From NCBI GenBank assembly GCA_010909165.1, contig VJWM01000007.1, positions 124,001 through 188,000 of the forward strand: 64,000 nucleotides of DNA, written 5' to 3'. The notes beneath the pieces are model-generated. The model did no database searches. It was not told where the DNA came from and was given only the letters and a program-made list of their open reading frames with translations. Numbering within the stretch: the stretch's first letter is position 1; each line of letters starts with the position of its first letter. This document shows positions 2,870 to 32,917 of this stretch, piece after piece. The position numbers and the translations under genes were made by a program. The DNA comes from Anthoceros angustus. Its lineage: Eukaryota; Plantae; Anthocerotophyta.

Positions 2870-4430
2870 TCAGGTCTGTCGGAGTTCTTCTTGAAGCATC
2901 TCGGTCACTTCTCGGACCACATCCGGTGGAAGCTGCGGGCGTTGCCGTGGGTGAGTCCGCTTCTCAGACTCCGGTGGCTTTTGGTTGGTCTTCTTCTGGC
3001 GGCTGCCGGTTAACTTCGTCCTCTTTGGCGGGTTCGGCTTCCTTCCTTGGTGTTCCGTCCTCCGTATCCGTGGGACTATCCCATTTTCTTCCTCTTGCGT
3101 CTCCTTTCCTTCGCTCCTTTCGGCGACTCGGGTTGACACTTCCGGTACCTCCAGTCCGCCTTCTTCTCCTTGGCGAACTTGCCCGTACCACCCAAGCTCC
3201 TCGGTGCCTCCTCCCACTCCGTTGTCGTCTTCAATGCAGGCGCGCCTTAGGGAGGGCGTGGGTGGTCTTGGCTCCCCGGGGTGGCGTGGCGCACCGTCCT
3301 GGCGAGGATTCGGACACAGTCTTGCCGCATGTGCCTCGCTTACAATCTCCACCACAGGTTCAAAGTCCCGTTGCCTTGCGGTGGGGTATGGGCCGTTGGA
3401 GTAGTGCGGGGTTCCCAGTTCCAGACCACCCCGAGAATTCACGGGGGCTCCCATGCGGTCTTGCATCGGAGGTCGATGCAGACGGACCAGCTGCTGGGGT
3501 ACATCGTCACAGGATACTGGTCCGGTTGTGCTTCTTGCACTTGGCGCATCCTCCCATTCCTCGGACTCTTCCCGTAGTCATACTCACAGTTCACGGGTGC
3601 GGAGGCGGTTGGCCTTGAATGCCCATGTTGGTGACACACCACAAATGAGTCACGGTGGTGGCCACCTTCGCGTTCTTTATCCTTCACGGTTGATCGTCAA
3701 CTCCTCCACCCTCTTCATTACCGTTCTAGATCTTCCCTCGGCCCGCTACTTCCTTCAAAGGGAGGTGGGGTGGACCTCTGTGCGGTGCGGGCATCATGAC
3801 CTCCTTCTTTTCCACCCTCACGACTCGGGCTTCTTCTTCTTTATTTTTCGGCGGGGTTCTTCTTCTTCCAGGACCTCCTCGGATTCTTCTTCGGAGTCCT
3901 CTTCCTCTTCCTCCGACGCTGCCTCGGTCTCATCATCCTCCTCGTCCGAGGGTTCTTCATCTTCGGAGTCCGACCCCCGTTTCTTCTTTTTCTTCTTTCC
4001 TCCTGGAGGAGTCCTCGGCCGTCGTTGGTGCATCGATTCTTCATAGTTCTCCGCCGCCCGGACCGCCTTGCTCACATCTTTCTCTGCCAACAGCAGCACG
4101 TGCTTAGCCATTGGCTTGGATAAGCCGGCGAACCAGCACCTTTGCATGGTAGTGTGGTGGGGTGCGGTCCGGTAGGGCAGATTCGATGTCGATCCCAACT
4201 TCTCCGTCTTTCCTCGCTTGAGTTCTCGAGTTTGGACAAGGCGTAGCCTTCTTGATCGATTCGCGGAATCTTTCTAAAGGCATCCTTCAATCTTGAAGGT
4301 TGCGGGGGAGCGTTACAGTGGTCGGTATTTCCTCCGATACCGAGCCGTCCCGAGACCCTTGGAGCAATTTGAATGAGTGCGCATCGAACCTTCTCCGTTG
4401 AAGTTTGCGCGACGAAATCCTCCACGAAGG
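2870..4430 (-). pseudogene. gag: gypsy gag (capsid-like region, acidic/basic linker, degenerate Zn knuckle), frameshifted
   Basis: ORFs 4072..4425, 3818..4198, 3439..3687 and 2870..3466 lie between the PBS and protease; E/K-rich linker. Confidence 0.7.
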
Positions 4431-5312: not shown

Positions 5313-5899
5313 CCCCCTATTACGGTGACGGCCCGGCTCGGTATGCCCTAATCGGCCGCCTACCATCCTATTTCCCTCCCCTATCTCCTTCCGGTGGGGC
5401 AGGAAGGTCCGGGTTCCGCCTTGGGATTGGTGGTCCAATCTCCGGCAATTGCGCGCAATCGGATGATCCGAGACCCTCCTTTCTCCGGAATCACAGCCGG
5501 GTTGGGCTCACCGTGCGGCCGGGTTACCACAACGTCATCCTCCCCTGGCCTTCCCGTGGGTCCCCCTCCGGTGGGGCCACCGGCTGTCAGCTCCCCTAGC
5601 GTAAGTCGAAGGGGACTCCTCCTTACTGCCGGAGTCCGGACCTCGAGGTCCGGTCTCGACTCCGGAGCCTGAACTCCAAGGGTCCGGTTTATTTCCCGAG
5701 TCCGACCGGCTGGGTCCGGCCTCGTCTCCGGGGTTCGGACCTCAGGGTCCGTACTTATTACCGGGGTCCGATCTCCAAACTCCGGACCCCCTTCCTGTGG
5801 ACCTCGTACTGCTAGGTCCTCCTCCTTACCCCCCGACCCTTGTCTTGGTCTGGGTTGGCTCCCCGTTGCACCTGCAGTCACCCCCCTTCCGGATCGGGT

Positions 5900-6975
5900 G
5901 GTGGTGAACTTACCTTAGGTCCGCTGCGTCCCACTCCTCTTGGGGCTCCTCTCCTTGTGCCGTCGTCTCCAAGCAGGGCCCCTAGGGTCCCCCTGTCTCC
6001 CGTGCCCTTCTTCCCCCCTCAAGGCCTTCCGGGTCCCCAGTGAGGCCTCTCACTTGAGCTCGGTGTGGTAATAGGCAAAGTCCGAATCCACTTGTTGGAT
6101 TGCCTCTTCCACGTGTGGAGCACGTCTCCTTCGCCATAGGTGCTCGGGGAGGCACTTGCCCTTGTTGCTCCACCTCCCGAGTTTGATATGGGCCGGGCTG
6201 CTTGAGGCCAGTGCCTCGGTCACCTCCAGATTGTTGCTCCACTTGCTCCAACTCCTCCTTCCGTTCGGCCCGCTTGCCCGCCATAGCAGCGTTCCCTTCC
6301 GACTTCCTCGGTGGACCGCGGCTTCTTATGCCTTCCGCGCCCTCGCCTCTTGTCCATTACATTAACTCCGCCATCTCGCTCCAGACGGTCAACCTGCCGG
6401 GCTGCGGCTTCACCAGGCCCTTTCTCCATCTCGGCGTCCACGCTCCTGTTCCATCGCCTTCGTCCGTCCCAGCAGGCCGGAGCCGCTCTATTTCCCGGTC
6501 GCGTTCCGCGACCATGTCCTGCAGACTACCATTCCTCTCAATGATAGTTTGGAGCTGCAGCTCCAAAGTCTCCTTGCGGTCCTCCATCTCCTGCCGCTGC
6601 TGCTCCACCTCCCGGAGCTGAGTCCGGAGATCCTCCATCTCCTTGTCGCGAACTTCTTGGGCTGGTGGTCGCGCTTGCTCCGCCACCTCCTGCTCCATCT
6701 TGAGCGGGCGGGCGCTATCTCCGAAGTCTGGATTCTCCCATTGAGAATTCCTTGCTTGCTCAAGCGTCTTGGAGTTGTAACTCCAAGGTGTCCTTCTTGT
6801 CCTCCTCCACTCCTGCCTCCCTTCTACCTCCTGCCAGGCTGCGCACAGGGTCCCGATTTCCCGGTCTTGGCCTCCAGTGTTGCAGCTCGTCAGAGCTTGC
6901 TCCACTTGCTCCACTTGCTTTCGGCCTTGGTTAGCGTGGCTCTCTCGGCCGCCTCCCTCCACCGGTTCCGATCAC
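5900..6975 (-). pseudogene. Retroelement accessory coiled-coil ORF, C-terminal part (split by element A)
   Basis: ORF 6357..6962 is a coiled coil (EMEDLRTQLREVEQQRQEMEDRKETLELQLQ); its frame can be joined to the minus-strand ORF ending at about 19042. Confidence 0.55.
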
Positions 6976-7014
6976 GCCGATAGTGATCAACAAGGTCTCC
7001 TAAGAGTGGGAGAC
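6976..7014 (+). repeat. Left terminal inverted repeat of element A
   Basis: GCCGATAGTGATCAACAAGGTCTCCTAAGAGTGGGAGAC matches the reverse complement of 19003-19041, with a 21-bp perfect core GATCAACAAGGTCTCCTAAGA. Confidence 0.75.
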
Positions 7015-7559
7015 GGCTCCTCGTCTCTGGTTTTGAGGGGGTGAAATTTGGGACCTGGAAACAAAAAAGCTTGAAATTCATAATTTGCAGAATTTTTAAA
7101 AAAAATTGCATGATAAAGATGTGACTTTAAGAATGAAACCATGCATTTCAATGGTTTTAAGGTAATAAGACCTTCACATGGTCTACACTCCTCCAAGTTC
7201 TCATGAATTTCTGCCAATTCTTTAAGACAGATACATGCAATTTATAGGCCGCACAAAATGGATATTAAAAAAAGGTCCACAAAATGAGTTTAAGGGTCCG
7301 TAGACTGACCAGAAAAAAAGAGCGACGCACATTGTACTGTACTTGTATGACCCCGGACATCCGGTGAATGTGCGAATGGTATGAATCCATTTTAGCTGGT
7401 GCAGGCCCGAGGTTGCACTACCCTGGAAATTGGATGAAATCTCCGAACTTCATACCGGCTGGCCTTTCGGACACACACCGTGCGGCAATCTATTTACAAT
7501 TGCGGGTTCAATGCGGTCGTACCACATCGTGACATCGTCCTTTACATGCATATGATGAA

Positions 7560-10500
7560 TGCATTCATCATGTCGCGACTAATCACCGTGGCGAGGCTTT
7601 CCACCATGAGACCCGTGTGGTAGTGTTGGACCAATTTCTTATAGCAATGCATTTCGCTATTCGTTGGTACGGTAAGCGCCCGCCATGGTCGATATCGATT
7701 TGCAATTCGATAAGGTCTCGGCCATGACACTTCACGCACATGGACGGCTCGAATCGGTGCCTCACCGCCTTCCCTCGCCTCGATCTCGCGGGGGCCAACT
7801 CATGCACCAATCGTCGGCCGTGGCCGTGTTCGAGACCAATTTCTTATAGCAATGCATTTCGCTATTCGTTGATAAGCGCCCGCCATGGTCGATATCGATT
7901 TGCAATTAAGGTCTCGGCCATGACACTTCACGCACATGGGAAGCTCGAATCGGGTGCCACGGCCTTCCCTCGCCTCTCGCAGGGGCCAACTCATGCACCA
8001 CTCGGCCCGTGGTGACAGGAAATGGCGATTGGCGGCGTGGCGTAGTTCGTCAATCCCCTTTTCACGGTGTTCGATTGAAGGATATGCATGAGGATGCTCA
8101 TTGATGCAATGTTGTTGAGGGACCATGTTTCTCCCTTGCAGCGATCGTGAACAAAAATGGTTCAAGCGAGCTTGGATCAAGCTGGACACAATGGACACCG
8201 ACAATGACCTTTATCACCGGCTGTCCGGTGTTGTGCAAGACGCTATGCACGCCATAAGTTGTCTCAAAGCTTTGGAGTCCAACACAAAAAGCAACGTTAA
8301 CCCAACTGGTAGATCTGCCAGTTTCCCCTCTCTCCCAATCCCAGTTCGGATGCTACAAGTTTGTTTTGGGTCGCGAAGTTGTCTGGAGAGTCAATCGGGC
8401 CATCATACTTCTCGGTGTCTCAAGGATGGACCTCGATCCATCGGCCCCAATGTTGCGGCAAAAGCCTCTTCTGCAGCCATCTCGCCAATGTCTGCGTCTT
8501 TCTCACTAACCTCACGCGCCCGGCGGATGTCCTACAACACCGTCGAAAGTGGATCGACACGCCTCCAATTGTGCATCGCGTCTTCTTGTCGCATGCGCGG
8601 ACCAGCGACCTGCCACCTGCGGCGGTGTTCACCATGGGCTCTTCTGCGTCTTGGGTCGCGCCAAAATCAAGCCTCCTCCTCCTCGCAGCGGTTGTCCATC
8701 GTATTGAGCGCCTGAATTGCCTGGGATCTCGTCTATCGAAATGACATTGCGGCGGACTTGAGGCTGCTACCATACCATACCAGAGCAGCACCATCTAGGA
8801 TCCACTCGCCTTCCATTGTGCAGCTCAATCAACTTCCTCAACAATCTAATGGGCTTCGGTAGGAAACCACCCTATCATCTGCGTGTTGTAACATAGCTTA
8901 TGTTCCTGACCTTCTCGGTAAAGCAAGTTGTCAACCCTCTGTAGTCATTCATAACATCGGTGATGCCGAGGGAGAAATCTTGAGGCAATCACGCTTTAAG
9001 GGCGCGTGGTGATGTAATCACCATCATCTGACTTATCTGGAGGTGCCGTCACATTAGTTTTGTGCGAGCGGGGCGTGACACCACCTTTACATCGCAAGCA
9101 AAACTTCACGAACCATGGACATATCATCGGTGAATGGAATACCACGACTCGAAAAACCTCGGGGTTGTGATGCCACGGAATGTCATTATGATCTTCTCAA
9201 ATTCGACGAGTGAACGCGTGTCATACTCCCTAGAGTTCGCATCCAAATTCAACCCGGGCAAGTCCAAGAATCATGGCAAGCGGACGGGGTTCTAGAGCCC
9301 TGTCTGCGATGTTGCCACATACTATACCTACCTGCAGTTCTCCGTCATCCACGAAAGTCTAACTTTTGATGCGGAGGCCTCCAACAATTGTCGCTCATCC
9401 GCCATTATCCTCCAAGCTTTGGCTTTCAAAACATGTTCCTTGAAATTGTCGAGTGCACTCCACTCGAGGCAGGCATTGGCCAGCGCATATGGCAAAGTTC
9501 CAATCGGACGTGGAAACAAACCATGCGCAAACAAGCATATTTCGTTTAGTACATATCACATGCCGGGTGGCGGTGCTTGCTCCATGTCACTTACCATATT
9601 TTTGAATGCCGGTTGAAAGTTCGATCTGCTCCACCGTCTTTGTATTGAGGGTATCGATCCCTAACACCTGGAAAGTCTCACAATTGAGTTCTTCGCAAGG
9701 GTGATGTGAATGAGGTTCAATTTTTGGCCTTCTCCACCCACTCTTGCATTTGCTTCAAGCTCATTTCTCCAGCCAAAACCTTCATGCATCGTCTTCAAAT
9801 TGTTGTTGCTGTGAGTGCTCGATACCACGAAAACACTTCCACACTCACGGGAACATCCGATTCCTTCACATCGATGACCACAAGATCTCTCAGCAGATTT
9901 CCTCGACTTGTAGTCTTTGTTTATTTGCTAGTGCTCGGGCATCTGCTCGCTCGGTAGTTGCCCATTCCCACTTCTCGAAAATCTCGTCCACATACCTCCA
10001 CACTTCGTCAACTTTTGCCACACAATAATCCAGTGTCCTATTGTCCACGGTGGTGATCACTGCCTTGGGGCCATGCTTGGCTGCATCCCACTTGGGGATC
10101 CTGCCTAATCGTGCATACACATCTAGCTTCCAATCCACGTCACACTTCAAACCCTTGACCTCAAGAGGCGACAACTCACTTCGATGTAACGCACGGTCCA
10201 TGAAGGTAAATGTCTTCTGGCGTGCTATGGTGTTGTGGTCCGTGGCTACGATCCTCATCTCGTCCTCGGTGAGTCCGGCACATATGCATCCATCCACTTG
10301 TACTCTTCCACCGGTGGAGTACGGATGAGACGGGGGACCTTGCACGGAAGGAATGGTTTCCCCTAAGGCGAAAAAATGTAATCCCCCATCCACCTTAAAG
10401 CGTGAAATTCTCTTGTAGCACATTGTGACGGATCCACAACCACAACCATGGGCAACACACCACCACCGGGGACAATGCTTCATCTTTTGCATCAAAGCCT

Positions 10501-11200
10501 CTACCCATGCGAGATCCAACTTCCTCACCTGACACAATTCCTCGAAGTGCAACACTTGATTGGCAGCTTCAGAGTAGACTCCCACACTCTCTTCATTGCT
10601 ATACCGTCCCTTTCCACGTCTCGGCTTGCATCTGCTTTGATGGCGCAAGCACATCGTCTGTAGCCACCGCTATCCTTGGCAATCTCCACAAACCTGGGAA
10701 GCGGTTCATCCTCCTCCTCCGACTCTTCGCTCCCAATTGCAATTGCAGGCTTCTCCCGTTTTGCCCTTGCCTTCTTGGCTTTGCCACTACCGCGGGCCTG
10801 CGCCTTCTCATCGATTGGTTTGCCATCTCCAGCTCCTCCCCTCTGTCGCCCCTTTGATGCATTCCCCACGGGCGGCGACTCTGCTTGCACCCTCCTGCGA
10901 TCCAGGACAAGCCACGAAGGCGCGAGCAATCATGCGATGGGGCGGGACCTCGAGGTCATGCTCACGCCGTCATTAGCCTCGCAGTCTCCTTCCAGGGTGA
11001 GCCATCTTCACCGTCTTGATCATCTTCGTCCTCCTCGGCGGGTAGGGCATCATAGTCCTCTGTGTCCTCACCGTCGTTCTCCATATCCTCGTCATACCCG
11101 GTCAAGCTAGCTTCCTTCTGCAGCCTTGAAGAATCACTAAGTCTGTTGGCAGTCAAAACCCGGGACGTCCGGTGCACACCGGACGCATTGGCTCGGACGA
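7560..11200 (-). pseudogene. ParB-like domain + two tandem beta-class N4C/N6A DNA methyltransferase domains (frameshifted as sequenced)
   Basis: ParB-like: QVRKLDLAWVEAL...GVLPMVVVVDP...FALG(G)NHSFRA (10351-10366)...EMRIVATDHN. MTase-1: DLP.GLN (9247-9264), HKTN, KPIRLLRKLIELH.MEGEWILDG..SG, RRNVISIDE (8720-8860). MTase-2: LADLPVGL (8297-8320), REK.IDEL...F.SP..EWVHEL, C...GRDL..IDID (7640-8050). Confidence 0.75.
7630..8010. repeat. Tandem duplication (about 200 bp) of the MTase-2 C-terminal coding segment
   Basis: 7630-7810 and 7838-8005 share CCAATTTCTTATAGCAATGCATTTCGCTATTCGTT...GCCAACTCATGCACCA. Confidence 0.9.
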
Positions 11201-11399
11201 GCCGGCGCCGATCTTTCTTGGATCATTTGCAATTGGTTGTATTGCAGACCTCTGAACGGATGCAGTGCTAGGATGTTTCCCCACCATGGCATTGCAGGGA
11301 TGCTTCCCTCGGATACCTGCTCGGTTGCATCCCAGCTGAGAAGCTGCTGGGTTGCTTTCCTGCAGATGCCCTTGTGAAATGATTCCCGCCATCTTGAAG

Positions 11400-13330
11400 A
11401 TGCTTCCGGTGATGCGATGCTGTTGTTGCTTCTGGCGGATGCTGGTGTGCTTAGCGGATGCACCGCTTGGATGCTTTGAATTCCGTCAAGTCGATGTCGA
11501 TCTATCCGCCTTTCCGGCCGATGATCCACTACCACCTGCGGCGGCGGTGGGTTTACACTGAATCCAGTACCGGCGCACGCCTAACGCCTTCTAAACATAC
11601 TTGGTGCATTACCTTGTGGAAAACTCTGCCCATCATTTTTCGCAAGCCTGCGGTTCTTCACGGGCGCTTCCTGGCAAGCCACGATGTCAAAATTCTTGAT
11701 CACGGTGAGTAGACTCGGGCGACATTGGGGTCGAGTTTGAGCTGGTTTGTCTTGATGTACACAAAAATGACATACCCTTGGTCATCCTTCTCCACAGTGC
11801 GTGAACAAACAAAACCAAGACATGAGGGCTTTGAAGGCGGCTTGTCCACAGAGGTATGAAATACCAACCGTCTGCGGGCGTTGTTGCCTGATCCAACTCG
11901 CCGAGATATATCGAAAGGAGAGTTGTCACGAAGCATCATTCCGATCATGTCGATGCTTGCTTGTAAGGACTTTGGAAAGTTGCTCTAGTTGGGGCGTTGT
12001 CGTGGGGCGAGTTCACGGTGTCGGGGTATGCATCTTGATGCCTTGGATCGGTGGTCAGGTCTCCATGGGGCCTATGAATCAAAGGCTGCCGCTGGTCCGT
12101 TTTCTCCCGCTAGCGCTCCATCGGGTTTGGCGCCTTTTCGCTTCTGTTTGAGGGCCCATCATGCCAAACAACCCATTGTAGCAAGGAGATCATTGGACAT
12201 ATTAGCAAGTATAACATGAGGGAAGCACATAATTGTTGCAAGCATTAAGGATTGTCGAAGCGTCTGGCGCACATCAACGGGACCACGGTATGTTCTTCGT
12301 GAAACACGGATGGCTGTGAGGTTGGAGCGGTGTTGACCTTCAATGAAACCACGCGAATTGAAAGACACTCCGATTCCGCGGTCGAATCGAGGGATAAGAG
12401 ACAAATCATCGCTTTGTCCCTCTGCTCAATATATCCACCATCTCGGCTCGTTGGCGCCAAAATCGGTCTTCCAGCGTGGAGGAAGGTAGTATGACTATGT
12501 GGGGTCACGATGTGCAAGAGCGACTCGGCATCGTCGGCAATTCGCAATTCCACTCCGCATGGGAAATCATCCAATGCGATCGTCGCCAAGTTTAGCCTTC
12601 ATTCGCCGCTCAAAGGCACATCGGCAAAACAAGTAGTAAAGCATATTTATGAGAATATTCCATGTTTTGCCATCGGCTAAACATGTTTCGCCTTTTGCAT
12701 AACCTCGGCTCCTCGATCCTTGCAATCATTAAGGCAATTAACGAGACTTGACGGGATCAGAGCCATAATTGGACATATTAGCAAGTATAACATGAGGGAA
12801 GCACATAATTGCAAGCATTAAGGATTGTCGAAGCGATGCGGCGCACATCAACGGGACCACGGTATGTTCTTCGTGAAACACCGGATGGCACAGTGAGGTT
12901 GGAGCGGTGTTGACCTTCAATGAAACCACGCAATTGACACTCCGATTCCGCGCGGTCGAATCGAGGATAAGAGACAAATCATCGCTTTGTCCCTCGCTCA
13001 ATATATCCACCATCTCATCGGGTTGGCGCCAAAATCGGTCTTCCAGCGGTGGAGGAAGGTAGTATGACTATGTGGGGTCACGATGTGCAAGAGCGACTCG
13101 GCATCGTCGGCAATTACAATTCCACTCACGCATGGGAAATCATCCAATGCGATCGTCGCCAAGTTTAGCCTTCATTCGCGCTCAAAGGCACATCTGGCAA
13201 AACAAGTAGTAAAGCATATTTATGAGAATATTCCATGTTTTGCCATCTGGCTAAACATGTTTCGCCTTTTGCATAACCTCTGGCTCCTCGATCCTTGCAA
13301 TCTATTAAGGCAATTAACGAGACTTCGGCC
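11400..13330 (-). pseudogene. Unidentified minus-strand coding region in element A (5' exons of the MTase gene or a separate gene)
   Basis: Protein-like fragments (ORFs 12245..12589, 12159..12404, 11700..11948) with no motif I recognise. Confidence 0.35.
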
Positions 13331-13350
13331 GCCAGGATCTGTAGCCGCAA
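12195..13350. repeat. Tandem duplication (about 575 bp)
   Basis: 12195-12770 and 12770-13350 both begin TTGGACATATTAGCAAGTATAACATGAGGG and differ mostly by indels. Confidence 0.9.
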
Positions 13351-13493
13351 TTCAGACATCCGGCGTCAACTGTCATAATTGATTACGGAGCGGGCCCTGA
13401 GAGCTGGATACAAGTTTGAACATGTCTAGCTACGCGTCTTCCTGCTCGAGCACATTGTGAGCAGCACTTTCTTCTACTCTTTGGTAGCGCACA

Positions 13494-16400
13494 ATGGCCA
13501 GTGACCTCAGCGCAGAGGAAGAGTTCTTTGATTTGGTGAACGACAGACTAGTGACTGCTGATGAAGATCTCGGGCATGTGTCCGAGTCCGACATCGTGGA
13601 CTTGGCGGCAGGCGCTTCATCATGGACAACCAAGGGAACCGCGGGACGTCCGGTGAATGTCTGTCAGAAGAACGGCCACACATCGACTTGGATGACACCT
13701 GCGGTGGTATAGCGACGAGGTCGCAAGCGATGGAGACTTGTTTTGTTCGATCCTGGTGGACACGGAGCAGCGGCGCGATCGGCAAGAAATTGCAGACCAT
13801 GTGGATCGGCGGTGGCGCGTGCCGCCGTGAACAAGGCGGCGCCCTCGATATCCCTCCCGATATCCGCAATCTTGGCCCGCCTCGGCACTGCGCCAGTACC
13901 ATTTACCGGCTTGTTCAAGTCACCGTGCGAAGAAGTTGGCGAGGATGTTTTGCCCGGATCCAAATCCGGGCCAAGCGGGTGTGTCCCGCGCGAGAGGAGA
14001 CAAGGTGGCGCCTACAAGATCCGTGTGGGGTCGCAGGAGTATTTTCAACGTTGTGTTTCACCGCGAGCCTGGCCAAAATAGCCGGAATCGGAAAGCAGTG
14101 TTCTTTGGTCGCCTGTGGTGAGAAGGTCCATGGCATTGTTGATTTTGGTTTGGAGTTTGCGAGTGGGTGAAGGAGGTTACGGGAGTGGAAGGCGGGGAGA
14201 CCAAATGTGGTACGAGATCCGATTACCTTTGTTTGGAGAGGAGGCGAGCAGGCCTCTGGCAGTGCAATCTTGCTCTGCTAATCCCAAGTCGAGGGGTTGG
14301 AGTTGCAGTCTATGGATGGGGTTATGTGTTCCACCAAGAACCATCTTGCAAGGAATAAGGTGGACAATGTTTTGGCGGCAGTAGTCGGGCTATGTGCGGA
14401 GGAGGCGGTCTTGTGGGAGAAAGTGCATAGGAAAGTTGGGACATGGCGGGCTAAAAGCCGTCGCGCCTTTTTCGATGAGTAAGGGGGAGCAGGAACAGCA
14501 TTTGCAGGACCAGATTGATGTGATCGAAGATGACGAAACTGGTGTCGTGACCGGATGGTTGAACAAGCTACCACACGGAAAGGTTTCGGTGTGTGTGAGG
14601 GCATTTTGCCGTGTGTTTTGCATTGGGGCACTCCGGTATCGGAATGCTCAGACCCAAGTACAGAAGGGGACGAGGTTTGCCGCTGAGCCCAGACCAGGAA
14701 AAATACCTACTTCGTATGGTCTACAGTAATGTGGATGGATTTGTTTTCAAAGGAAATGTGGAAAGGCTACCCAATAGGGAAGTCTTTAACACCGATACAT
14801 TCACGAAGGAGGAGATTTATATTGAGTATGCTAGACAACGGTGAGAGCGATTACCGCACATGTATGTTCTGACTATTTACGCAAGTTGTGGATCGGCACT
14901 TGGTCTGTTAAAATACCAAGATCCAACCGCTTCTGCATGGCATGTGAGAAGTTAAAAGCTAAAATAAAAACGCCGGAGCAGCGAGCAAGGTACAACCGAG
15001 AATCCCTCTACCTTATCATCAGCACCGGATGTCCGGTGATTGGATGGCCGTGTCTTGGTAGAAGTGTGCGGCAAACCCTATGGCCTTAGGAGACTTAGGG
15101 TTTTGGCACGTATGACTTTGGGCCACAGCAGAACACTTGCGTTGTTGCGCGTGTGTCTTGATGGTGGCCCTTGTATGTGCGAGATAGAAGCGAACTCCTC
15201 AATTATCACCGGATCAACAACGGATGGAGCGGAGGAAAATGGCTTGCATCGCGGAAGTGTATGGCTCAACCGACCAAGTACATAGGGATTGCGATAGATG
15301 GTATGGACCAGAAAAAAACTGAGTTGCCTCATTTCCGTAGAGTGCCCAAAGAGTGCTGCCCTAATCTCTGTCCATGTGGTTGGGGTTTTGGTGTTCAACA
15401 AATTCATGCGCACTTATGTGTACCTAAGCTACCCCAATATTCGGAATGATCCTAACGGCACAATTGCTGTAATCCAGCATTTGATTAATTTGTGGGAGGG
15501 GCAATTGCCTGAAACTCTTTACTGCGGATGGACAATACTGGCTCGAACAAGAACCGAGGAGGTGTTGGCGTATTGCGATGTTGGTGTCCATTGGTATTTT
15601 AAGAAGGTTAAAGTGGGGTTTCTCATTGTTGGCCATACCCATGATCGATTGATCAAATGTTTTCCGTTTTTACATTGTCTTGAACTTGAAGAGGCATACA
15701 CATTGCGGAGTTGATTGCTTGCTTGGAGAGGGCTTATACTCCTCAAGGTCCATCTCATGAAGGAGGTGCCGATTTTAAGCAATATTTATAACGCCGAGGT
15801 TCTCCCGCAACGTCTGATCTACACAACCAGTTTTCAACATCAATTTAAGGTCACTCGGGAGGAGTTGCCTAGTCATGAGTTTGTGGCGGTCTTTGAGGTG
15901 CAAGCAATTTTCCACGGCTTCACGGACCCCGGATGGTGGTGTTCAAACGGATGGAGTGCCGAGAGGGAGATTGTTGCGGCTCCACTGGTACCACGCATGT
16001 GAGGCGAAGGGCAAGGAGCATCCACATGTATGTCTGGCAGGCTATGGGTGAGTGGAAGACAATAGGCGGTTAAGAACTTCCACAATCTTCAATGCGTTAA
16101 AATATCTTGGTGGGATGGTTTTGGGAGGAGCGATTGGCAATAGCGGGTTTAGTAGCGTCGGTCATCTTCGTCCATTGGAAACGCATGGACATGGTATAAC
16201 CGGAAGCGCATGCTCAAGAACCTCCGTGATGTTTCGGACAGTAGTGGTGGATGCAGACACTAGAATATTTGACAGACCCAGAGATTTATCGGTGCCCTGG
16301 CGGAGCAGTTGGAACAACAAGCCAGAGGATCTATTACTGAGATCCAAGCAGGCATGATGATTGCGGTCCAGGCTGCAGATGACCCTGAGGGCCGGCCTTT

Positions 16401-16663
16401 CTAGCTACAAGGTTGTGGAGGTGGACCATGAAGCTGCTGACCTGCTAGCACAAATCCACTGGTGGCGCACAGAAAACCCTAATGCACTTGAGGGTAGGTA
16501 CTCGGAGGAATGGGTGCCGAGTACCCACCAGTCACGGAAAGGTAGGCGCGAATCCTTTGAAGAAACATGTCCAAGCCATCAAGCTTTTGGAGATTCGATC
16601 ATGGGTTACGATTTTGTGTTGACGAGGAGCAGGACTTTAAGCAAAACACCATGGATATGTTGA
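13494..16663 (+). pseudogene. Sola-like (DUF7869-type) DDE transposase A, with an intron at about 14990-15183
   Basis: VCVRAFCRVF; VKIPRSNRFC..CEKLK; YIGIAIDGMDQKKT (15284-15320); (M)DNT..ENKN (about 15525-15555); GFLIVGHTHD (about 15615-15645); C-terminal GMMIAVQAADDPEGRPF..KVVEVD..IHWW. Confidence 0.8.
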
Positions 16664-19002
16664 AGAGGAAGGTCTTTGAGTTATGGCGAGCCTAGTGAGG
16701 CGGTGCTTCCTCCCTGTTGATGGTGATGGCGGTGATGAGCGGATTGATTCGGAAGACTGGACAACATTGAATCCTCGATGCATCTGTTGATTATTTGGTG
16801 GACTTGATGGCGGTGTGGACTCGTGAGAGCGGATCCTAACCCACCTAGAATTAATTTTGATGTTGGTCGGGAGAGAGGCGAGGTCATAGCGGTGATTTCT
16901 AGTTATGTGAAGGTGGTTTGTTTTATTAGGATGTGTGCTCCTCTTTTGGAGTGTTGGCAAATGGTTGAGTCTCTGGCTTCTCCACGGACATCCGGGACTT
17001 GTTATAACACGTATCATGTTTTGTAAGGTTTCACACTTGTCGGTGTATGGCACAGTGTACCGTTTTTGAGTGCGTCGATGGATTCGACAATTGTATGTAG
17101 GATGGGAAGGAATGGGGAGAGACGGGCGTAAACCCTCCTCCGGCCGGTACTCCCTCTTGCCCTCACTCTTCTTTTATTTTCCATCACGCTCCAAGAGCTG
17201 CGCTTGCCGTGGTTGGCGATCTGGCGGCTCGAGTGCCACCGGGGTGAGCGGGCGTGGTGGCCTTGGGTGGCAGCGAGTGGTGCGTGTTGGTTGAGGAGGA
17301 CTGCCATTTGCAGGCGCTATCGGGAGATTGGAGCAGTGGCAAAGGTTTCGCCTGCAGGCTGGTGCATTGGTCTTGGCGCACCGCTTCTGGTGGTGCTCGC
17401 CACTCGCTGGTGCAATGACTGCCTGCTACTAACCTGGACTTGTGGCACCCCGCCTTTGTGCAGGCTAGTTCTCCACGATTGCGATGAGAACGAGGGGCGG
17501 CGGCTACCAGTCACCCCCACGGGTGACATCTCACATCGCAGTGAGGGCTAGGAGGAAGACCTCCTCGGTGGGGCCTCGCAGGGTCCAACACGCGAGGCAA
17601 TGTCGCTGTTGGCGATCCGGGCTTCAGTGGCACCGTTTTCCTCACCCCAAGCTGTTGGTTCGGAAGGGAGGTGGGTGTCGGTGGCCTTAAGGGAGCCGCT
17701 AGGTGTGGACCCCTTCCGAGGGATGAGGGTGGAAAGCCAAGGGATATAACCGTGACCTCTCACTTGGGGAGGAGGTGAAGACAGTGAAAGGAGCTTGATT
17801 CGACCATATTTGGCGGTGAAGCCGGAGATGCGGGAGTTGTCTGAGGAGTTGGATGCGAAGGCACGTATGGGCGAGAAGGAGGCGAGGGAGCTAGCCTGGT
17901 GATGGTCGCAGCAGGCCGCGAGCCTTGGCGGTGGAGGAGGCGGCCGTGAGCGGGAGTGAGGATGGCAAGTATGGTTTCGCCTTCGAGATTCTTGCCATGA
18001 TGTTTACATCACGCTGTTGCTTGTGGTTGTGTTCTCTTGCGGATATTTGATGGTGTTGATGCAGGTGCTAAATGGCACATCTGGTTTGACCGCTAGTGTT
18101 GGTTTCTTGTTCGGTGGTGCATTCGGTAGAGAGTGTAAACGGAGACTAGCCTAGGAATGAGCACTATTGATTTTGGTTTCTATAGCGGATGCTCACTCAA
18201 TCGGAATAGTGCTTTTGTTGAATCCTTTACACACACTTTGGTCTTTGACGTGGTACATCGTTTAAAGCATGGTCAATATGGGCATTGTGGGCTGGTGCTC
18301 ACCGGACATCCGGGTTTTTATTGCTTTCTTCGCCTTGTCCCGTTCGACTTTCTTCATGACGACTTGGCGGTGTTTAAGCTATCCCTTTTATAAGTAAATC
18401 AGCACTGGCTCCTATGGTCTAGTGTGTTGGGTTTTAAGCTCGCCTTGTGTCGTGTATTTGGATGGCAAATGCGTAGAAGGCGATTAGTTAGTTTACATTT
18501 GGCTAAATTATACATCTAATTCACCACTTGGATACCAAATGACATGTGTTGATGCATTTGTTGTATTATGTATAGTGACATGTAGAGACATATTGAACTT
18601 GAACTTTCACGTTGCCACATATTTAAAGACACCGTTCGGGGATGTCCGGACATGAGGGGCATGTGAAGGAAATGAAATGTATCCACAACATTAGTCTCGT
18701 CTGGACTTTGACCCTTAGTACATATATTCAAAAGCGTCACAAACTTGGCGATTTTGAAAGACTAACCGATTTTGGAAAAGTGTCCTTGAAAGTCGCGGGT
18801 ATTTTCAAACTTGATCCAACCGAGGACCATTATTTGCAAGATCAAATGGCATGATAAAGCTAGAAATGGTGTTATGAAAAACCAGGTTATCTGCGATGTG
18901 TGTTTTGACCCTTGTGTGGAAAAACCCACGAAATCACGATTTGATTTGATTTCAAATGTAAAATTTGGTCATTTCGACCTCTGTCTCTAAAAAGAGGGGT
19001 GT

Positions 19003-19041
19003 GTCTCCAGGTCTTAGGAGACCTTGTTGATCGCGATCGGC
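19003..19041 (-). repeat. Right terminal inverted repeat of element A
   Basis: Reverse complement GCCGATCGCGATCAACAAGGTCTCCTAAGACCTGGAGAC. Confidence 0.75.
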
Positions 19042-21351
19042 CTTCGCCGTGGCCTCCGCCTCCTTGGCCACCTTCACCTGAGCCTCTCGACAGCTGGTCG
19101 GTCAGGCTGCCTCACTTGATCCGCGCCCATTCTGCTTGCGCCCGGGCGCCCTCCGCTTCCTGCTGCGCTACGCCCCTCTGCCTGCAGAGGTCCTCCGCCA
19201 GCTTGGGCCTCCTTGGCTGCCCTTGTCCTCCGGTGAAGGAATTTAGTCCGATCCTTGCGGATGGACCACCTCCCTCTCGCCTCGGCGGCGTTTCCCTCCT
19301 CAATCCGGCCGAGAGCTTGGCCTTCCTTCTCGCCTCTGGGCTCCCTCCAGCTGCTCTGGAGGTACCATGCGCCTCGGGTGGCTTCTACCTCTGGGTCTTC
19401 TCGGCCATCCCGCGAGACCCCAGGCATACCGTCCATGGCGGTGGCAGGACCCCGCCGTGTTTCTTCCACGGCGGCTAGTGAGCTCCCACAAAGTCCGTGG
19501 CGGGGCCGGCATCTCACGGTCCGCCAAGGACCTCCATACCGCATCGAGTAGAGTCGGGTGGGTTCTCGGACCTAATCGGGACCCTTAGGTCACGAGTCTT
19601 GGCTCAGCTTCTCCCTCCTTGGCCCTTTTGGCGCGAGCTCCTTCTCGCCCTTTTTCTCACAGGGCTCGGAGGAGGTGAGTCAGGAGCAAGCCTTTTGCCC
19701 CTTCACATCGGCAGGACCCGCCGTGTTTCTTCCACGGCGGCTGCTGTGAGGCTCCCACAAAGTCCGTGGCGGGGCCGGCATCTCACGGTCCGCCAAGGAC
19801 CTCCATACTTGTCCGGAGTAAGTCGGGTGGGTTCTCGGACCTAATCGGGACCCTTAGGTCACGAGTCTTGGCTCGGGCTTCCCTCCTTGGCCCTTTTGGC
19901 GCGAGCTCCTTCTCGCCCTTTTTCTCACAGGGCTCGGAGGAGGTGAGTCAGGAGCAAGCCTTTTGCCCCTTCACAGCCGGGGCCGGCTCGAGTGCTGCAG
20001 TGTCCTCCTGCTCCACAGGCGTCCCTTCGCCCTCCTTCTTGCTTCCTCCGCTTCTTGCCACTCAGGTAGGCGGGGTAGAATCTTGGCACCGGCAGGTGCA
20101 GCGTTGGTGGCGTGGTCTTGCGTCTCTTGGCTCCCTCACAGTCCGTGGGGCTCCTCGGTAGGAGTGGTGGCGGTGGGCTGGCAGTTGGGGCCGCTTCTGC
20201 AGTTGCTGGTTGGGGCACGGGGAGGAGGCGGAATTTCTTCCATACTTCCACAGGTGGTGAGGGGTCCGTTCACGGGTGTAGAGTCGGAATCCTCGATCGT
20301 CCTCCTCCGTCCGTTTGGCTTTCGATCGGCCTCCTCCTCGGCGCCCTTGCCGCTCCACTTGGCGAGCCTCAGTCCTTCCGGGCGCTCGCTCAAGCTCTCC
20401 TTCCTTGAGGAGCTCAATGCCCCATACATGGATCGGTATGGGGCGGCCCAGATGGCGAGGCTTCTCGGTCCACGAGCTTGCGAGCCTCTGGCTAAAGGTG
20501 AATAATCCTTCCCCGGTCCGCCCTCTTCCCCGGCAGCGCATGCGGGAATACCAGTGATTATCACCAAGGTGATCCACCTTGGTAGTAGGTTCGATGGACA
20601 ATGATCCGCGCCTTACTGTTATCAGCGGTCGGATGTCGACCAACCGTTGGTGGTCCGCGTCGAGCCTCGGCGCCATGTTGGTGGCCCTATCTTCCCGCCG
20701 CCTTGAGGGGCTCGGCACCCTCCCCTCTTCCTCCTTTGGGCGGTTGTAGGCGCCTCGGGACCTCAAGGTCCATCGCCTTGGGTCCTCCGGAGGTTCTTGG
20801 ACCGCACCTCCTTATTGACCGCCACATTTCCGGGCGAACTCCGGACGGTGACACTATCGAATGTCGGACCATGGAACACATCTAAATGCCACTCCTGCAC
20901 CAATTCTCACCTTCCTGGGCCGGGGCCCAAAGTCCGGATAGCGCGGGTCACAATGTTGCGCTCCACAAGGTTCCATGACTCCCAAACTTCCATGAGCTTT
21001 TGGGTGCCATCGCCTTCTCCTCCCTTGGTTCTTTGTAGCCGCTTGTCGGAGACCCGGCACGTTGCGCCTTCTTGGCGCGTTCGTGCTCCGACCTCAGCGG
21101 TGAGCCGCGGGATGTCCCAGGTGTCCCACGAGATACGCCGAGAGAGGTGCGGGCGCAAGAGATCGCGAATTGTCTCGAGTGTCCCACGAGATACCGCCCG
21201 GAAGGCCGTGCGGGCGCAAGAGATCGCGGTGTCTCGAGGCCTTCCTTGACGCTCGCCGGGAGTAACGGCCCAGGCGGAGGCGCCTCTTCCACATCCGTAG
21301 CGCGGTACGCATGGCTTGACCTTACGCCTCCGCTTACTGCGGCCTTCGCCG
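19042..21351 (-). pseudogene. Gypsy-family accessory ORF, N-terminal part (host of element A)
   Basis: Homologous in reverse orientation to 60000-60860 (LVE[RK]NIVT.RYPDFGP; shared CACCAAGGT.G.CCACCTTGGT), which lies downstream of a gypsy integrase. Confidence 0.65.
19443..19975. repeat. Tandem duplication (about 267 bp)
   Basis: Units start GGCAGGACCC(C)GCCGTGTTTCTTCCACGGCGGC at 19443 and 19710 and end GCCCCTTCACA. Confidence 0.9.
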
Positions 21352-21510: not shown

Positions 21511-24500
21511 TGAAAAGGTATACTTGGGTGATGAGAGTGTGGGGAGTAGTCTTCAGATCCTTGGTAGAGGAGTCTGTAAGTTTCCCCTACACGACGATAG
21601 TGTGTTAGTTCTTCCCGACGTCTTGTATGTACCAAAGATGGCTAAGAATTTGATGTCACTTAGCAAATTGATGAAGATGAAGGATCTAGTCCTTACCGTC
21701 TCGAGATGGCGCTTGTTGTTTCTCTAGGCGTAGTGCTCCAAACATTTGTATCTTCAAAGCCTTTGTAGATTGATTGTACCGTCTAGACATTTTACGCCTC
21801 CGTAGGCTGACAAGCATTTTCTACGGTTGGCGACCTCACAATTTGTCCTGAGCGGTATGGCATGCGCCTTAGCCATGCTAAGAACTAAACTCATTGATAT
21901 CTCTAAGCGGGACTACTATCGTGAGCCTCTTCCACGTTGTTTTAATGAGCTCCCCATTTGTGAAGTTTGCACTCTTGCCAAGCAACGAGACTCCCTTTCA
22001 AGAGCACACACGAGGTCAACATCGATCCTCGACTTAGTGCATTCGGACATATCAGGCGGGCTACAAACTCGGTCACTAGGTGGTGCAACCTATTATTTGA
22101 CATTAAGCCGGCGACTATAAGGTATCGTGGACATACCCTATGCATCATAAGAGTGATACATTTTCTATCTTCAAGGATTGGTTAACCATGGTGCGGCGTA
22201 AGGCAGTGGATTTGCTAAAGCTTTTCGGGTGACAACGGTGGTGAATTTGTGAGCCATGCCTTCACGGAGTTCTGGCCGGCCAAGGCATTATTCATCGACT
22301 TATCGTTCCATATACTGACAAAATGGGGTCATGAGCGAAGAATCAAACATTGATGGGAATGGCGAGATCAATGCTCTTGTGGTCGGGATTACCTTCTCCA
22401 TATTGGGAAGGCAGTTACTACATATATACTCAACAGACTTCCATCACATTGGTCACGGTATCGCCTTTGAGAGATTACGGAAGAAAACCAAGTATCATGC
22501 ATCTTAGCATCTTTGGTTCGAAAGCTTATGCATACGCCTGCGAGAGAAGGCGTAAACTCGACAATCGTTCAAAGGGGTTAGTATTTGTTGGAGTGCAATG
22601 AAATTGCTAAAGCCTACAAACTCATTGATCAGACACCTTACGACCAAGCGCGGAGTGTGACCTTTCAGAACATTGGAGCCACCAATCACGAGGGCGGCGT
22701 TTTTGCACACTCAACATGATGGTAACTTGACATTAGCGGAGGAACATTCGACTACCACGATGATGTTGATGGAAATCTGCTCGAGATATTCCACCTTGCA
22801 ACTGTACATCCCATGTCTTTGCCTCACGGCCTGGAACCCACCAATTCCGGTGGCCTGACCAACGGATCTTGATCCTCCGATTCTTTGATGCACAAGTAGA
22901 TGCACTATGCGATGCTGAAAATTCGATCATGAACAACACGAGAACCCGAAAATCATGTAGACTCGATTGACACAGTTCTTCTCATGCCTACGATTACTGG
23001 CGATGAGAATGACCATTTACGAAGAGAATGCTCCTCAGCGGTCGTCGATCCACCGTGTACGCGTCCTCCATCGAATGGATAGAGCCCCTTACACATCCAT
23101 CGACTTTGCAAGTCGGTGGGGTTTGCACACCGCTGTCACAATGCCTCCTTGCCATCATCCCTCACAGAACTGTCACCCTCAAAGAAGCATTTCGGTCGAG
23201 ATAGGGATAAGTGGAAATCTGTGATGGATGATGAATTTAATAGCCTCATCTGAGAATGGTACGAAACTTGTTCCTCGACCAAAGGCGTAAACCCATAACA
23301 TGCAAATGGGTATTTAAGCATAAATTAGATGCTAATGGCAACATAGCAAGATATAAAGCGAGGCTGCCACGTGGGTTCACGCAAATACGGTCCGACTTTC
23401 AAGAGACCTTCTCTCCGGTGTACGCTCTCAATCAATCCGTCTTATGCTTGCTTTAGGCTGCGTGATTTTGAGCTGCGGCGAGATGGATGTGGCGGCCTTC
23501 TTGCATGGAATTTTGGAGGAAGAGCTGTATGGAGCGGCCGAAGGATACGAAGATCCGATCATCCGAGACTATGTATGTCGACTTATCAAATGCATATATG
23601 GTCTTAAACAAAGCAGGCGTTGGAATGCAAAATTTGGATACATGCGAAGGGGCTGGGCTTTCGCGAGCCCTGCTGATCCCTCTGTTTATATCTATGATGA
23701 TGGCACCTCCTATGTACTGCTTGCCGTTTATGTTGATGATGCAATCTTTGCTGGCAATGACACACAACTGTTAGCACGAGTACAAGACATGCTGCGAACC
23801 GAGTTTGAAATGACGGATGTTGGGGAACTGAAATTTTGTCTTGGAATTCAAGTGTTGAGGATACGTGAAGAGGGCCTGTTGATCATACACCAGCGCAAGT
23901 ATATTTCAGAAATCCTTCAACGCTTCAATATGACCAATGCACATCCCGCCAATACACCTTGTGCAAGTGTGAAGCTGTGATCCCCATCTCGCGGACATTG
24001 CCATATGAAAGATGTTCCCTCTACGCTTGCTTGGCGTTTGCTATTGTGAGCAATTGACCCGGCGGATATCACATATCTGTTACAGCTTCACAGTTCTGGA
24101 ATGCGCCGTAATCATGGGCGCCATCAAGCGAGTATTTCGTTATTTGAAGGAACACATCATTATGGCTTATGCTACAAGAAGCAGGAGTGACACCTACCTT
24201 GTCATTGCCTTTGGGCATCTGATGGGGATACACGCAAGAGCTTGTCAACATATGTGTTCTTCTTATCCTCTGTAGCTGTCACATGGAGTTGTAAGAAACA
24301 AAGCAGGATCGCCCTTTCAAGTACTGAAGCTGAATACAAATGCCTTCTGACATCTTGCGAAGAAGGCGAGTGGGCACGTTCCTTCCTCTCCTCGGTTCAT
24401 TGTGACGGTATCACCCTCATCTTTGTATTGTGATAACCAATGCGCCTTAGCCCTTGTTGATCGTCCTAGGTTTCACTGGGAAGCATATAAGTGCACACCA

Positions 24501-28200: not shown

Positions 28201-28969
28201 GTTTTATGTTGCTTTTGTTGCCCTCTCATAAGTCGTGTTTGTTCTTCTTGGTATAGGGCTCCCACCAAAGCCTCCAGCGAAGGAGTTGGAGTTCCAGTGA
28301 AGGGACGCCTGAAGAGCAATGGGCATATTCGAGTAGTGACAAAGTTTGATAGCTTGCGGGAAGGCTGACCAGAAATTGTGCCACTGCGTCAGCTTCAGTC
28401 ATAGGACTCCCAAGTGCATTGAGTTGGGATCGCAAGCGTCGAAACTTGCTAACATGATGTGACACGGACTCACCATCTCTCATGCGCAGGCTGCAAAGTT
28501 CAAGGCGAATTGCACAAAAGGTCATCATGTTCTGAACCTTGTAAGTATTTGATAATTGATCCCATATATCCTTGGCTTTAGTCAAGTATTCGGTTTCAGG
28601 AATAAGGTCAGCATCCAAGCCGTTAACCAAAAGAGCAATGGCGATGCTATTGAAACCATCCCACTTGTCCTTGTCGACGAGTAACATTTGCAGCGGTTCC
28701 TTGTGCACGAGGACACCGGGTCCGGATAGGAGCCATCAACAACAATCCAAACGCCACGAGCTACCAAGGTAGTCTTCATGCAAACCTTCCAGATGTCAAA
28801 TCTCGTCCCATTGAAGCGGTCTTTGTCCTTGATATCGGATGTGAATGAAGGTGTTGCCATGGCGTTCGAATGTCAAGTGAATGAACTATAGTAGGACTGC
28901 TACAAGAGAGATGTCTACGAGTCAATAGAAAATGTGGGAGATTCATATCTAGGTAACTGCCTAAATGTG

Positions 28970-32221: not shown

Positions 32222-32917
32222 GTGCACGAGATTGTAAGCGATTTTTGGCATCAATACCAACTGATGGAGGGAGAAGGCAGGGGAGCTAGGCAAGGGCGTA
32301 GGAGACTGCGGTCGGAGCTGAATTTACGGCAACACACTATGGCAGCTTCGCTTCCTGCCGAGAACCCCAGGGAGGTGGGGGAGCACGACCACATTTGGAA
32401 TTACCTTTCACACGCGATGCAGCGAGGTGGGGAGCATATGTTGGGGGAGATTGGCTTGCATGAGTTGACCACACTGCAGGATTGTTTGCGCAATGTGGAG
32501 GACCTTGTAGATCGTGCTAAGGCAACAGCTGTGGAGCGGGAGATGGAAGTTGTAGCAGTGCAGAAGGCGGAGATTGAGTTCTCGAGAAACCGTGCCCTGG
32601 AGGAGAAGGCTGACATGCAAGCTGAGTTGGACATTGTCGCGCATGATCATAGAAACAGAATCCGGACTATGAAGGAATTGCAGAAAGCTGCTTTGGCGCA
32701 GCAGAAGGGAGAGCACGAGGCTCTCCTCGCTGAGGAGCAATGCAAGAGTGTTTGTAAGAAGTGTCTTGACAGGTATAGGGATGTGGTGGTGATGCCTTGT
32801 AAGCATTTCACTTACTGCCTGCAGTGCTTGGCGGAACACAGATTGCAGCAGGATAGATGCCCGAGTTGCAGAGGCCCCATCCACGGCATACTGGGGTGCC
32901 TCCTCGGCTATCCTTGA
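32222..32917 (+). CDS. Coiled-coil + C-terminal C3HC4 RING finger protein (putative E3 ubiquitin ligase, BOI/SBP- or IAP-type RING)
   Basis: Intact 231-aa ORF; CKKC...VVVMPCKHFTYCLQC...CPSCRGPI fits the C3HC4_3 pattern; heptad-rich middle. Confidence 0.8.
   Translation: MHEIVSDFWHQYQLMEGEGRGARQGRRRLRSELNLRQHTMAASLPAENPREVGEHDHIWNYLSHAMQRGGEHMLGEIGLHELTTLQDCLRNVEDLVDRAKATAVEREMEVVAVQKAEIEFSRNRALEEKADMQAELDIVAHDHRNRIRTMKELQKAALAQQKGEHEALLAEEQCKSVCKKCLDRYRDVVVMPCKHFTYCLQCLAEHRLQQDRCPSCRGPIHGILGCLLGYP

Follow-up and report, generated by a model that had tools for sequence, protein, structure and literature searches.

A probable decayed two-gene DNA transposon with a methyltransferase-like accessory gene in Anthoceros angustus

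Among transposable elements with DNA-modifier genes, the literature searched yielded retrotransposons that encode C5 or Dam-type methylases and DNA transposons that encode TET/JBP or SET proteins. Dam-type methylases, previously reported only in DIRS elements, have been described in long terminal repeat (LTR) and DIRS retrotransposons, termed DAM-LTR and DAM-DIRS (bioRxiv 10.64898/2026.05.21.726589), and the copies of the DIRS1 methylase domain were judged catalytically inactive (PMC4738411). DNA transposons with an epigenetic second gene include elements with fungal TET/JBP dioxygenases, HarbingerS and MuDR elements with SET domains and VANDAL elements with anti-silencing (VANC) genes; no amino-methyltransferase is listed among the transposon-borne modifiers in that source (PMC12730594). 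Dam-like genes lie near Maverick-like elements in Trichomonas, and several phage-derived N6A clades are known from protists (PMC4738411). N4CMT of bdelloid rotifers and DN4MT1 of Marchantia polymorpha are eukaryotic N4-methylcytosine (4mC) writers of bacterial origin (PMC8885841; bioRxiv 10.1101/2021.02.12.428880). Here we describe a 64,000-nucleotide stretch of Anthoceros angustus DNA (the window), in which positions 6976-19041 are probably the remains of an old eukaryotic cut-and-paste DNA transposon with two genes, a copy that is now dead. One gene resembles a DDE-type transposase; the other, termed the accessory gene, ends in a domain that resembles phage and plasmid DNA methyltransferases.

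Like DAM-LTR, DAM-DIRS and DIRS1, this element would represent a prokaryote-derived methyltransferase domain carried and amplified by a eukaryotic transposable element. However, those elements are retrotransposons with Dam-type domains, whereas the present one is a DDE-type DNA transposon with terminal inverted repeats (TIRs) and a PF01555-type domain in a separate gene. The TET/JBP, SET and VANDAL elements share the cut-and-paste mode and the epigenetic-modifier gene with it, but differ in enzyme class and transposase superfamily. N4CMT and DN4MT1 are likewise prokaryote-derived beta-class amino-methyltransferase domains in eukaryotic genomes. They are, however, host genes with the N4-type motif (T)SPPY and demonstrated activity, while the gene described here has Asp at the first position of this motif, lacks PPY, and is multicopy and transposon-borne. 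The sequence comparison covered N4CMT.

Boundaries and transposase of the element

The element is delimited by an inverted pair of 39 nt, formed by a left arm at 6976-7014 (+) and a right arm at 19003-19041 (-), in which 34 of 39 positions (87%) are complementary. This pair was by far the top inverted pair within 5500-20500, and the 16-nt TIR core, GATCAACAAGGTCTCC, had exact matches in the 64-kb window at the two element ends only. By our own estimate, the chance expectation of such a pair in 15 kb is ~5e-8. The TIR-bounded unit measures 12,066 bp and contains two genes in a head-to-head layout, with the accessory gene running from ~12000 to 8630 on the - strand and the transposase gene starting at ~14400 on the + strand. 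These data bear out the original prediction of a TIR-bounded DNA transposon of ~12 kb, with a transposase on the + strand and a second gene facing it on the - strand. Self-BLAST revealed no second copy of the 12-kb unit in the window, and a search of the window for a paralogous empty site found none.

The + strand gene is a DUF7869 transposase pseudogene spanning 14415-16546. One of its pieces, 15298-15711, matched the Pfam family DUF7869 (PF25273) with E = 4.6e-15. The stop-free pieces between 14415 and 16546 were collinear by tblastn with two relatives: L008, which is also matched by DUF7869 in Pfam, and L014, which encodes a near-intact protein and is one of seven loci (L014-L020) recovered by a metagenome scan for DUF7869. 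IDGMDQ, LYLQxDN and GHTHxxID blocks and a conserved intron are common to the DUF7869 relatives. In the window, the first catalytic Asp, within IDGMDQ, lies in frame near 15290-15305; the second, within RMDN, is present in a frame that differs from that of its flanking residues and is intact in L008 and L014. In this way, two of the three acidic residues of the catalytic triad were located. The reading frame changes near 15340-15380, the C-terminal half contains at least 6 stops when aligned in its best frame to the intact relative L014, and the C-terminal IHWW region lies at 16409-16546.

Since Pfam assigns no function to DUF7869, the fold was modelled on a relative; a literature search for DUF7869 found no paper mentioning the name. 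The AlphaFold2 (AF2) model of L014:2916-3878, built from a 14-row alignment, had a predicted local distance difference test (pLDDT) score of 70.7 and a predicted template modelling (pTM) score of 0.75. Its elements follow the order beta1-beta2-beta3-alpha-beta4-alpha-beta5, with IDGMDQ on beta1, LDN after beta4 and GHTHDHID after beta5. Comparison of the model with the PDB by Foldseek placed retroviral integrases at the top (probability 0.9-0.99, E ~1e-3, TM ~0.3), followed by RNase HI, NurA, UvrC-C, terminase nuclease and EndoV. As nearly all of these matches share the RNase H-like fold, it is reasonable to regard the + strand gene of the window as a DDE-type transposase with a predicted RNase H-like core, although the E-values are weak. 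The Pfam match and the predicted fold of the relative thus agree with the DDE transposase originally proposed on the + strand.

A TIR search in the metagenome DUF7869 loci yielded nothing convincing. At L008 no left TIR was found, and TIR likeness between L008 and the window did not rise above that of shuffled sequences; the right end of L008 (~5760-5790) reads TTGTTGAT..CGAT and weakly resembles the right TIR of the window, a similarity that is not significant alone. In L014 (1044-2843), the N-terminal 330 residues consist of a long array of acidic SEDFNGTDDEFP-like repeats followed by a Cys-rich region, and this array is absent from the window and L008 copies. A second, different DUF7869 remnant lies in the window at 52116-54026 (+); it is 54% identical to L014 over 106 aa, is broken by stops and frameshifts, and has neither an accessory-gene homolog nearby nor palindromes of the kind described below.

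The accessory gene and its methyltransferase-like domain

Relatives of the accessory gene were sought by an exhaustive HMMER search, in which the 9893-10669 frame was used as the query against 1.84 billion cluster representatives standing for ~15 billion proteins. Only five proteins were recovered, all from Logan assemblies of the Sequence Read Archive (SRA) runs SRR33208241 and SRR33208242, and a literature search for these run numbers found no paper. The accessory-gene family is extremely rare in this search, with relatives in two sequencing runs only. Scans of JGI metagenomes and IMG/VR gave no match to the middle domain of the protein, and word-indexed homolog searches with the methylase piece of the relative L003 and with the N-terminal domain returned nothing or the query itself only. 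In the organism of SRR33208241/2 the accessory gene is multicopy, with mutually frameshifted paralogs, as expected for transposon genes.

The 3260-bp contig L003 carries a near-intact homolog composed of an N-terminal domain, a charged linker, a middle domain, a second linker and a C-terminal domain. It contains one in-frame stop at 2401-2403, where the window has Trp. A frame change at ~2695-2710 falls in a run of T inside the methylase-like domain; this could be an assembly error and, if so, the L003 copy is nearly functional. The window is collinear with L003 from 10704 down to ~8730. Upstream, an acidic/basic linker and a probable N-terminal domain occupy 10705-12050 (-) with weak similarity, of which only PLPRFVEIAKDS at 10704-10669 is clear; the N-terminal domain is 46% identical between L001 and L003 over 92 aa and is barely traceable in the window. 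The conserved middle domain at 9812-10704 (-), which includes the GGNHS motif, DWKL and VWQYVDEIF, was delimited by tblastn with pieces of L003-L007 at 37-57% identity. A 259-codon open frame at 9893-10669 departs from the ancestral frame around 10330-10394. The methyltransferase-like domain remnant, of the N6_N4 beta class, follows at 8632-9270 (-), where it was delimited by motif search, translations and collinearity with L003 pieces; its reading frame changes at least 4 times and contains several stops. The accessory protein once comprised roughly 1000 residues, with an N-terminal domain, a charged linker, a middle domain and a phage/plasmid-derived methyltransferase-like C-terminus. In the window, both genes are pseudogenes with many frameshifts and stops, and no protein can be made from either. 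Activity of an enzyme from this copy is thus not supported.

A ParBc domain, which had also been suggested for this gene, was not recovered from the middle domain by Pfam, PDB profile search, PHROGs, NCBIfam or tblastn against phages. Nor did Pfam, the PDB profile search, PHROGs or NCBIfam assign this domain to any other known family. The GGNHS..AR stretch recalls ParB by eye only. AF2 modelling of the middle domain from 12 fragments gave an unusable model (pLDDT 46), and the region is treated here as a domain of unknown fold.

The identity of the C-terminal domain was approached through both the window and L003. The - strand of the window retains LDLPGLNLD (with DLPG at 9264-9253), KPIRLLRKLIEL at 8856-8821, EGEWILDG at 8813-8790 and RNVISIDE at 8751-8728. 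These motifs lie in differing reading frames with stops between them, and ten window pieces of the gene had no match in Pfam. In L003, the C-terminal domain contains LLLLDLPRGLDLD and, further on, SPYQKPLLCLLKRIISMF..EWVVDGCCGSGSG..ARNVVAVDV. Segment 2655-3260 of L003 scored 27.7 bits with the Pfam family N6_N4_Mtase (PF01555), for which the cut-off is 26.7 (E = 3.3e-6, over profile positions 74-213). The same segment matched DNA methyltransferase families in PHROGs with E-values down to 1e-7, and matched CcrM weakly in NCBIfam. Tblastn with this segment detected 373 phage and 85 plasmid records annotated as DNA methyltransferase, with E down to 3e-6, and the matched enzymes are themselves clear PF01555 members. 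Weak matches in the PDB comprised DpnA (0.011), TTHA0409 (0.054), N4CMT (chain 8s9m, 0.23), RsrI and CcrM. The match to the sequence of the N4CMT structure is not significant and is weaker than that to DpnA; a special link to N4CMT is not supported.

The best database matches were orphan PF01555 methyltransferases of phages and plasmids, such as Gordonia phage GMA4 Orf54 and the Fusobacterium phage Funu2 DNA methylase. The accessory gene shares with these enzymes the permuted order of motif IV before motif I and the block (T)QKP...L...ii......VlD...GSG...A..L.R..i..e. Both the window and L003 have this order, with a motif IV-like DLP(G) upstream of KP..L, EWILDG and R..ISID (8856-8728 in the window). 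In L003, the QKP block and motif I (SPYQKP...EWVVDGCCGSGSG) align to DpnA and the phage enzymes, and DGCCGSGSG is well kept; the window retains PKP...EGEWILDG, with a frameshift through the glycine loop. In contrast to the phage and plasmid enzymes, which have ~260 residues and a Tyr in motif IV, the domain described here forms the C-terminus of a eukaryotic protein of ~1000 residues, encoded by a gene with an intron within a TIR transposon, and the Tyr is replaced by Arg or absent. Collectively, these comparisons suggest that the C-terminal domain is homologous to the beta-class N6_N4 methyltransferases of phages and plasmids, an assignment that depends on one relative, L003. The original prediction of a prokaryote-type amino-methyltransferase gene therefore holds in part: the quoted motifs, their order and the homology through L003 support it, whereas the profile search succeeded with L003, just above the cut-off, and failed with the window pieces.

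Motif IV bears most directly on the activity of the domain. The clade is defined by the motif [DNSH]PP[YFW], in which the aromatic residue makes a stacking contact with the flipped base; in N4C enzymes this motif starts with Ser (PMC4738411). Aligned on the phage sequence ADIPYN, motif IV reads D-I-P-Y in the phage relatives, D-L-P-R(-G) in L003 and D-L-P-G in the window. The family thus departs from the clade pattern, with Asp at the first position, Leu at the second (Ile in the phage relatives) and no aromatic residue, which is Arg in L003 and missing in the window. Because L-D-L-P-G-L-x-L-D is the most conserved part of its segment between L003 and the window, copies that are otherwise far diverged, this form of motif IV seems to go back to the ancestor and to have been under selection, not to have arisen by decay. 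A single ancestral or programmed frameshift shared by the methylase domains of L003 and the window was considered and rejected, as the frame changes occur at different nucleotides.

These observations also bear on the possibility that live copies encoded a working amino-methyltransferase that deposited N6-methyladenine (6mA) or 4mC on the element or on the host genome, as the earlier note had supposed. This possibility draws on the homology to PF01555 DNA methylases, the good conservation of motif I and the QKP region in L003, and the conservation of LDLP-GL-LD between far-diverged copies, which suggests selection; moreover, the closest phage relatives already have a non-proline residue at position 2 of motif IV (DIPY), as does the family's D-L-P. 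It is opposed by the loss of the base-stacking aromatic residue, by the precedent of DIRS1, whose transposon-borne methylase domains were judged inactive (PMC4738411), and by the inability of the window copy to make any protein. On balance a working writer appears doubtful, though it deserves consideration. Since the aromatic residue of motif IV is missing, the sequences do not support a standard 6mA or 4mC writer. Should the domain be active, the rule of PMC4738411 would make adenine, not cytosine, the expected target, given the Asp with which the motif begins. The domain is probably derived from a methylase and probably binds S-adenosylmethionine (SAM).

Introns, a shared palindrome and the unity of the element

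The two contigs L003 and L004 are 100% identical except for 267 extra bases in L004 (1890-2156), which begin with GTAAGT and end with CAG. Because L003 (spliced) and L004 (unspliced) are otherwise identical, the accessory gene is transcribed and spliced in the organism of SRR33208241/2; that spliced and unspliced contigs occur side by side is the sole basis on which the sequencing type of these SRA runs was deduced. In L005 and L007, the interruption falls at the same codon. In the window, a GTAAGT at 9594-9589 lies within a codon of this position and forms the donor of a degenerate intron at 9495-9594 (-), whose acceptor is not recognisable.

The transposase gene was likewise interrupted. L008 has an in-frame GT..AG intron at 2889-3326, and L014 has an intron with GTATGT..TAG at 2816-2895, equal to it in position and phase, both splitting an Asp codon. 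At the same position the window has a degenerate intron at 14990-15161 (+), with the donor AAG|GTACAA, and this interruption is the homologous, decayed intron. The GT-AG intron originally proposed for the transposase is thus corroborated by canonical in-frame introns in two relatives, and the use of introns as an argument against bacterial contamination is strengthened by the 267-nt intron that is present in L004 and absent from L003.

Bacterial or phage contamination, or a very recent prokaryotic insertion, would account for the fact that the closest identifiable relatives of the methylase-like domain are phage and plasmid enzymes. However, spliceosomal introns occur in both genes of the family, and the transposase is of a eukaryotic type and lies in the same window as copia elements and a RING-finger gene. 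Long open reading frames (ORFs) are almost absent from the window, in which only five reach 220 aa or more. In addition, identity to any phage enzyme is 25-40% and is confined to the C-terminal half. This explanation is exceedingly improbable.

A second feature common to the two kinds of loci is a 16-bp palindrome, CACCGGACATCCGGTG. Counted at up to 2 mismatches, four distinct sites lie in the element and one elsewhere in the window (63155), where 0.08 matches would be expected in the whole window. Motif scanning placed the four sites in the left subterminal arm at 7351-7366 (1 mismatch), in the left arm beyond the 3' end of the methylase-like gene at 8215-8230 (1 mismatch), inside the transposase intron at 15023-15038 (perfect) and in the right subterminal arm at 18300-18315 (2 mismatches; also recovered by the inverted-pair search). 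Weaker sites lie at 11159 and 13640. Compared with shuffled sequences, the window element had 4 sites against a mean of 0.0, the accessory-gene loci (L001, L003-L007) had 4 against 0.015, and the transposase locus L008 had 6 against 0.005. No site was found in the distant DUF7869 loci L014-L020, for which the shuffle mean was 0.005.

Outside the window, the palindrome occurs in L008 at 1534-1576, 3086-3207 and 5442, in L004 at 2034 and 2082, in L005 at 1449 and in L007 at 1438, and the L008 intron holds four copies. It is often arranged in inverted pairs and, in two organisms, turns up repeatedly in arms, between the genes and within introns of both genes. The palindrome is probably a protein-binding site of the family; it could also act as a hairpin or be tied to the origin of the introns.

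Whether the two genes form one element or are neighbours by accident was weighed from the same data. Both genes lie inside the TIRs, with palindromes on both sides of the methylase-like gene, those at 7351 and 8215 being outside its 3' end. The closest relative found for a piece of the window transposase, in a word-indexed search of a 5.8-billion-protein collection, came from SRR33208241, so that the closest relatives found for both genes derive from the same sequencing run or runs (SRR33208241/2). The two genes have diverged from the window copy to a comparable extent, with 41-61% amino-acid identity for the transposase and 37-57% for the accessory gene. The shared TIRs, the shared palindrome, the relatives from the same runs and the similar divergence favour a single element; that the locus is one two-gene element is accordingly quite probable, and the methylase-like gene likely belongs to the transposon.

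Several observations weigh against this interpretation. The two genes were not found together on any second contig. L008 has the transposase, but a truncated copia RNase H fragment (998-1480, -) lies ~800 bp upstream of it and there is no accessory gene. Conversely, L001 has the accessory gene beside a ubiquilin gene, without the methylase part and without a transposase. The seven distant DUF7869 loci and the second remnant in the window have no accessory gene, although their flanks are short. At the ends of the element there is no target-site duplication: the flanks, ...CCGATCAC| and |CTTCGCCG, show no direct repeats in the 2-10 bp range. For the methylase domain, the Pfam match is marginal, was obtained with a single relative and falls mostly within the SAM-binding half, and motif IV is known from two sequences only, both from damaged copies. 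The target-site duplication may have decayed, as the TIR arms themselves differ by 13%. Since the copia fragment abuts the upstream region of L008, this locus cannot serve as a test of linkage between the two genes; the copia junction lacks an LTR and could reflect a rearrangement, a deletion or a chimeric contig.

The separate occurrence of the two genes in L008 and L001, and their absence together from any other contig or DUF7869 locus, would fit a composite neighbourhood, in which a methylase-like gene of another repeat or of a host family was trapped in a DUF7869 element by nested insertion or capture. However, the 16-bp palindrome occurs in both kinds of loci and in both organisms, the relatives of the two genes share their sequencing run or runs and a similar divergence, and the palindromes flank the gene inside the TIRs. 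Further, the inverted-pair search revealed no internal second TIR pair or LTR bracketing the methylase-like gene. Such an accidental association is therefore considered unlikely, and we infer that the second gene is the element's own accessory gene.

The remaining features of the element are two duplications detected by self-BLAST. In the left arm, two direct copies of ~195 bp (7629-7823 and 7834-8012) are 87% identical and together occupy 7629-8012. The intergenic region between the two genes holds a 561-bp tandem duplication at 12189-13325, with copies at 12189-12749 and 12765-13325 that are 94% identical.

The window is eukaryotic and repeat-rich. Ty1/copia fragments with RVT_2, copia-type gag, Pol beta-barrel, integrase SH3-like and RNase H matches lie at 23444-24476 (+), 27523-28708 (-) and 39670-42004 (-). 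A 231-aa ORF at 32222-32917 (+) contains a coiled-coil-like region and a C-terminal C3HC4 RING finger (Pfam E = 2.8e-11) and is possibly an exon of a host gene. A 268-bp tandem duplication at 19443-19975 (94% identical) begins ~400 bp to the right of the element. On the left flank, 6357-6962 (-) is a coiled-coil-like open frame of 201 aa with no Pfam match, and the insertion may have occurred within a gene or within another repeat. A scan of the window against Rfam gave no match.

Possible function and meaning

In live copies of the single two-gene element favoured here, the accessory protein may have acted on the element's own DNA. A standard 6mA or 4mC writer is a less likely role for it than that of an atypical methylase or of an accessory factor that binds SAM and DNA. 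The methylase-derived domain would then be a SAM-dependent module whose catalytic activity was altered or lost, and the palindromes in the arms, the promoter region and the introns would be candidate binding sites for the accessory protein or the transposase.

ParB proteins recognise 16-bp parS palindromes. By analogy, the accessory protein might have recognised the 16-bp palindromes of the element and methylated or otherwise marked its own DNA through the SAM-binding domain, and so have controlled transposition or escaped silencing by the host. Such a self-directed marking module is a speculative reading and unlikely on present evidence. If it were true, no cut-and-paste DNA transposon before this one would have had an amino-methyltransferase system aimed at itself.

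The literature searched contained no description of a PF01555-type gene within a DDE-type TIR transposon. Such an element, with a gene derived from phage-type N6_N4 methylases, would extend the known cases by a new class of enzyme and a new kind of vehicle. Transposons equipped with DNA-modifying enzymes illustrate how epigenetic control in the host is manipulated by mobile elements, and they are also a documented route by which prokaryotic methyltransferases have entered eukaryotes. In this family, the altered catalytic motif, together with the family-specific palindrome, raises the question of whether the domain is a writer or a repurposed binder.

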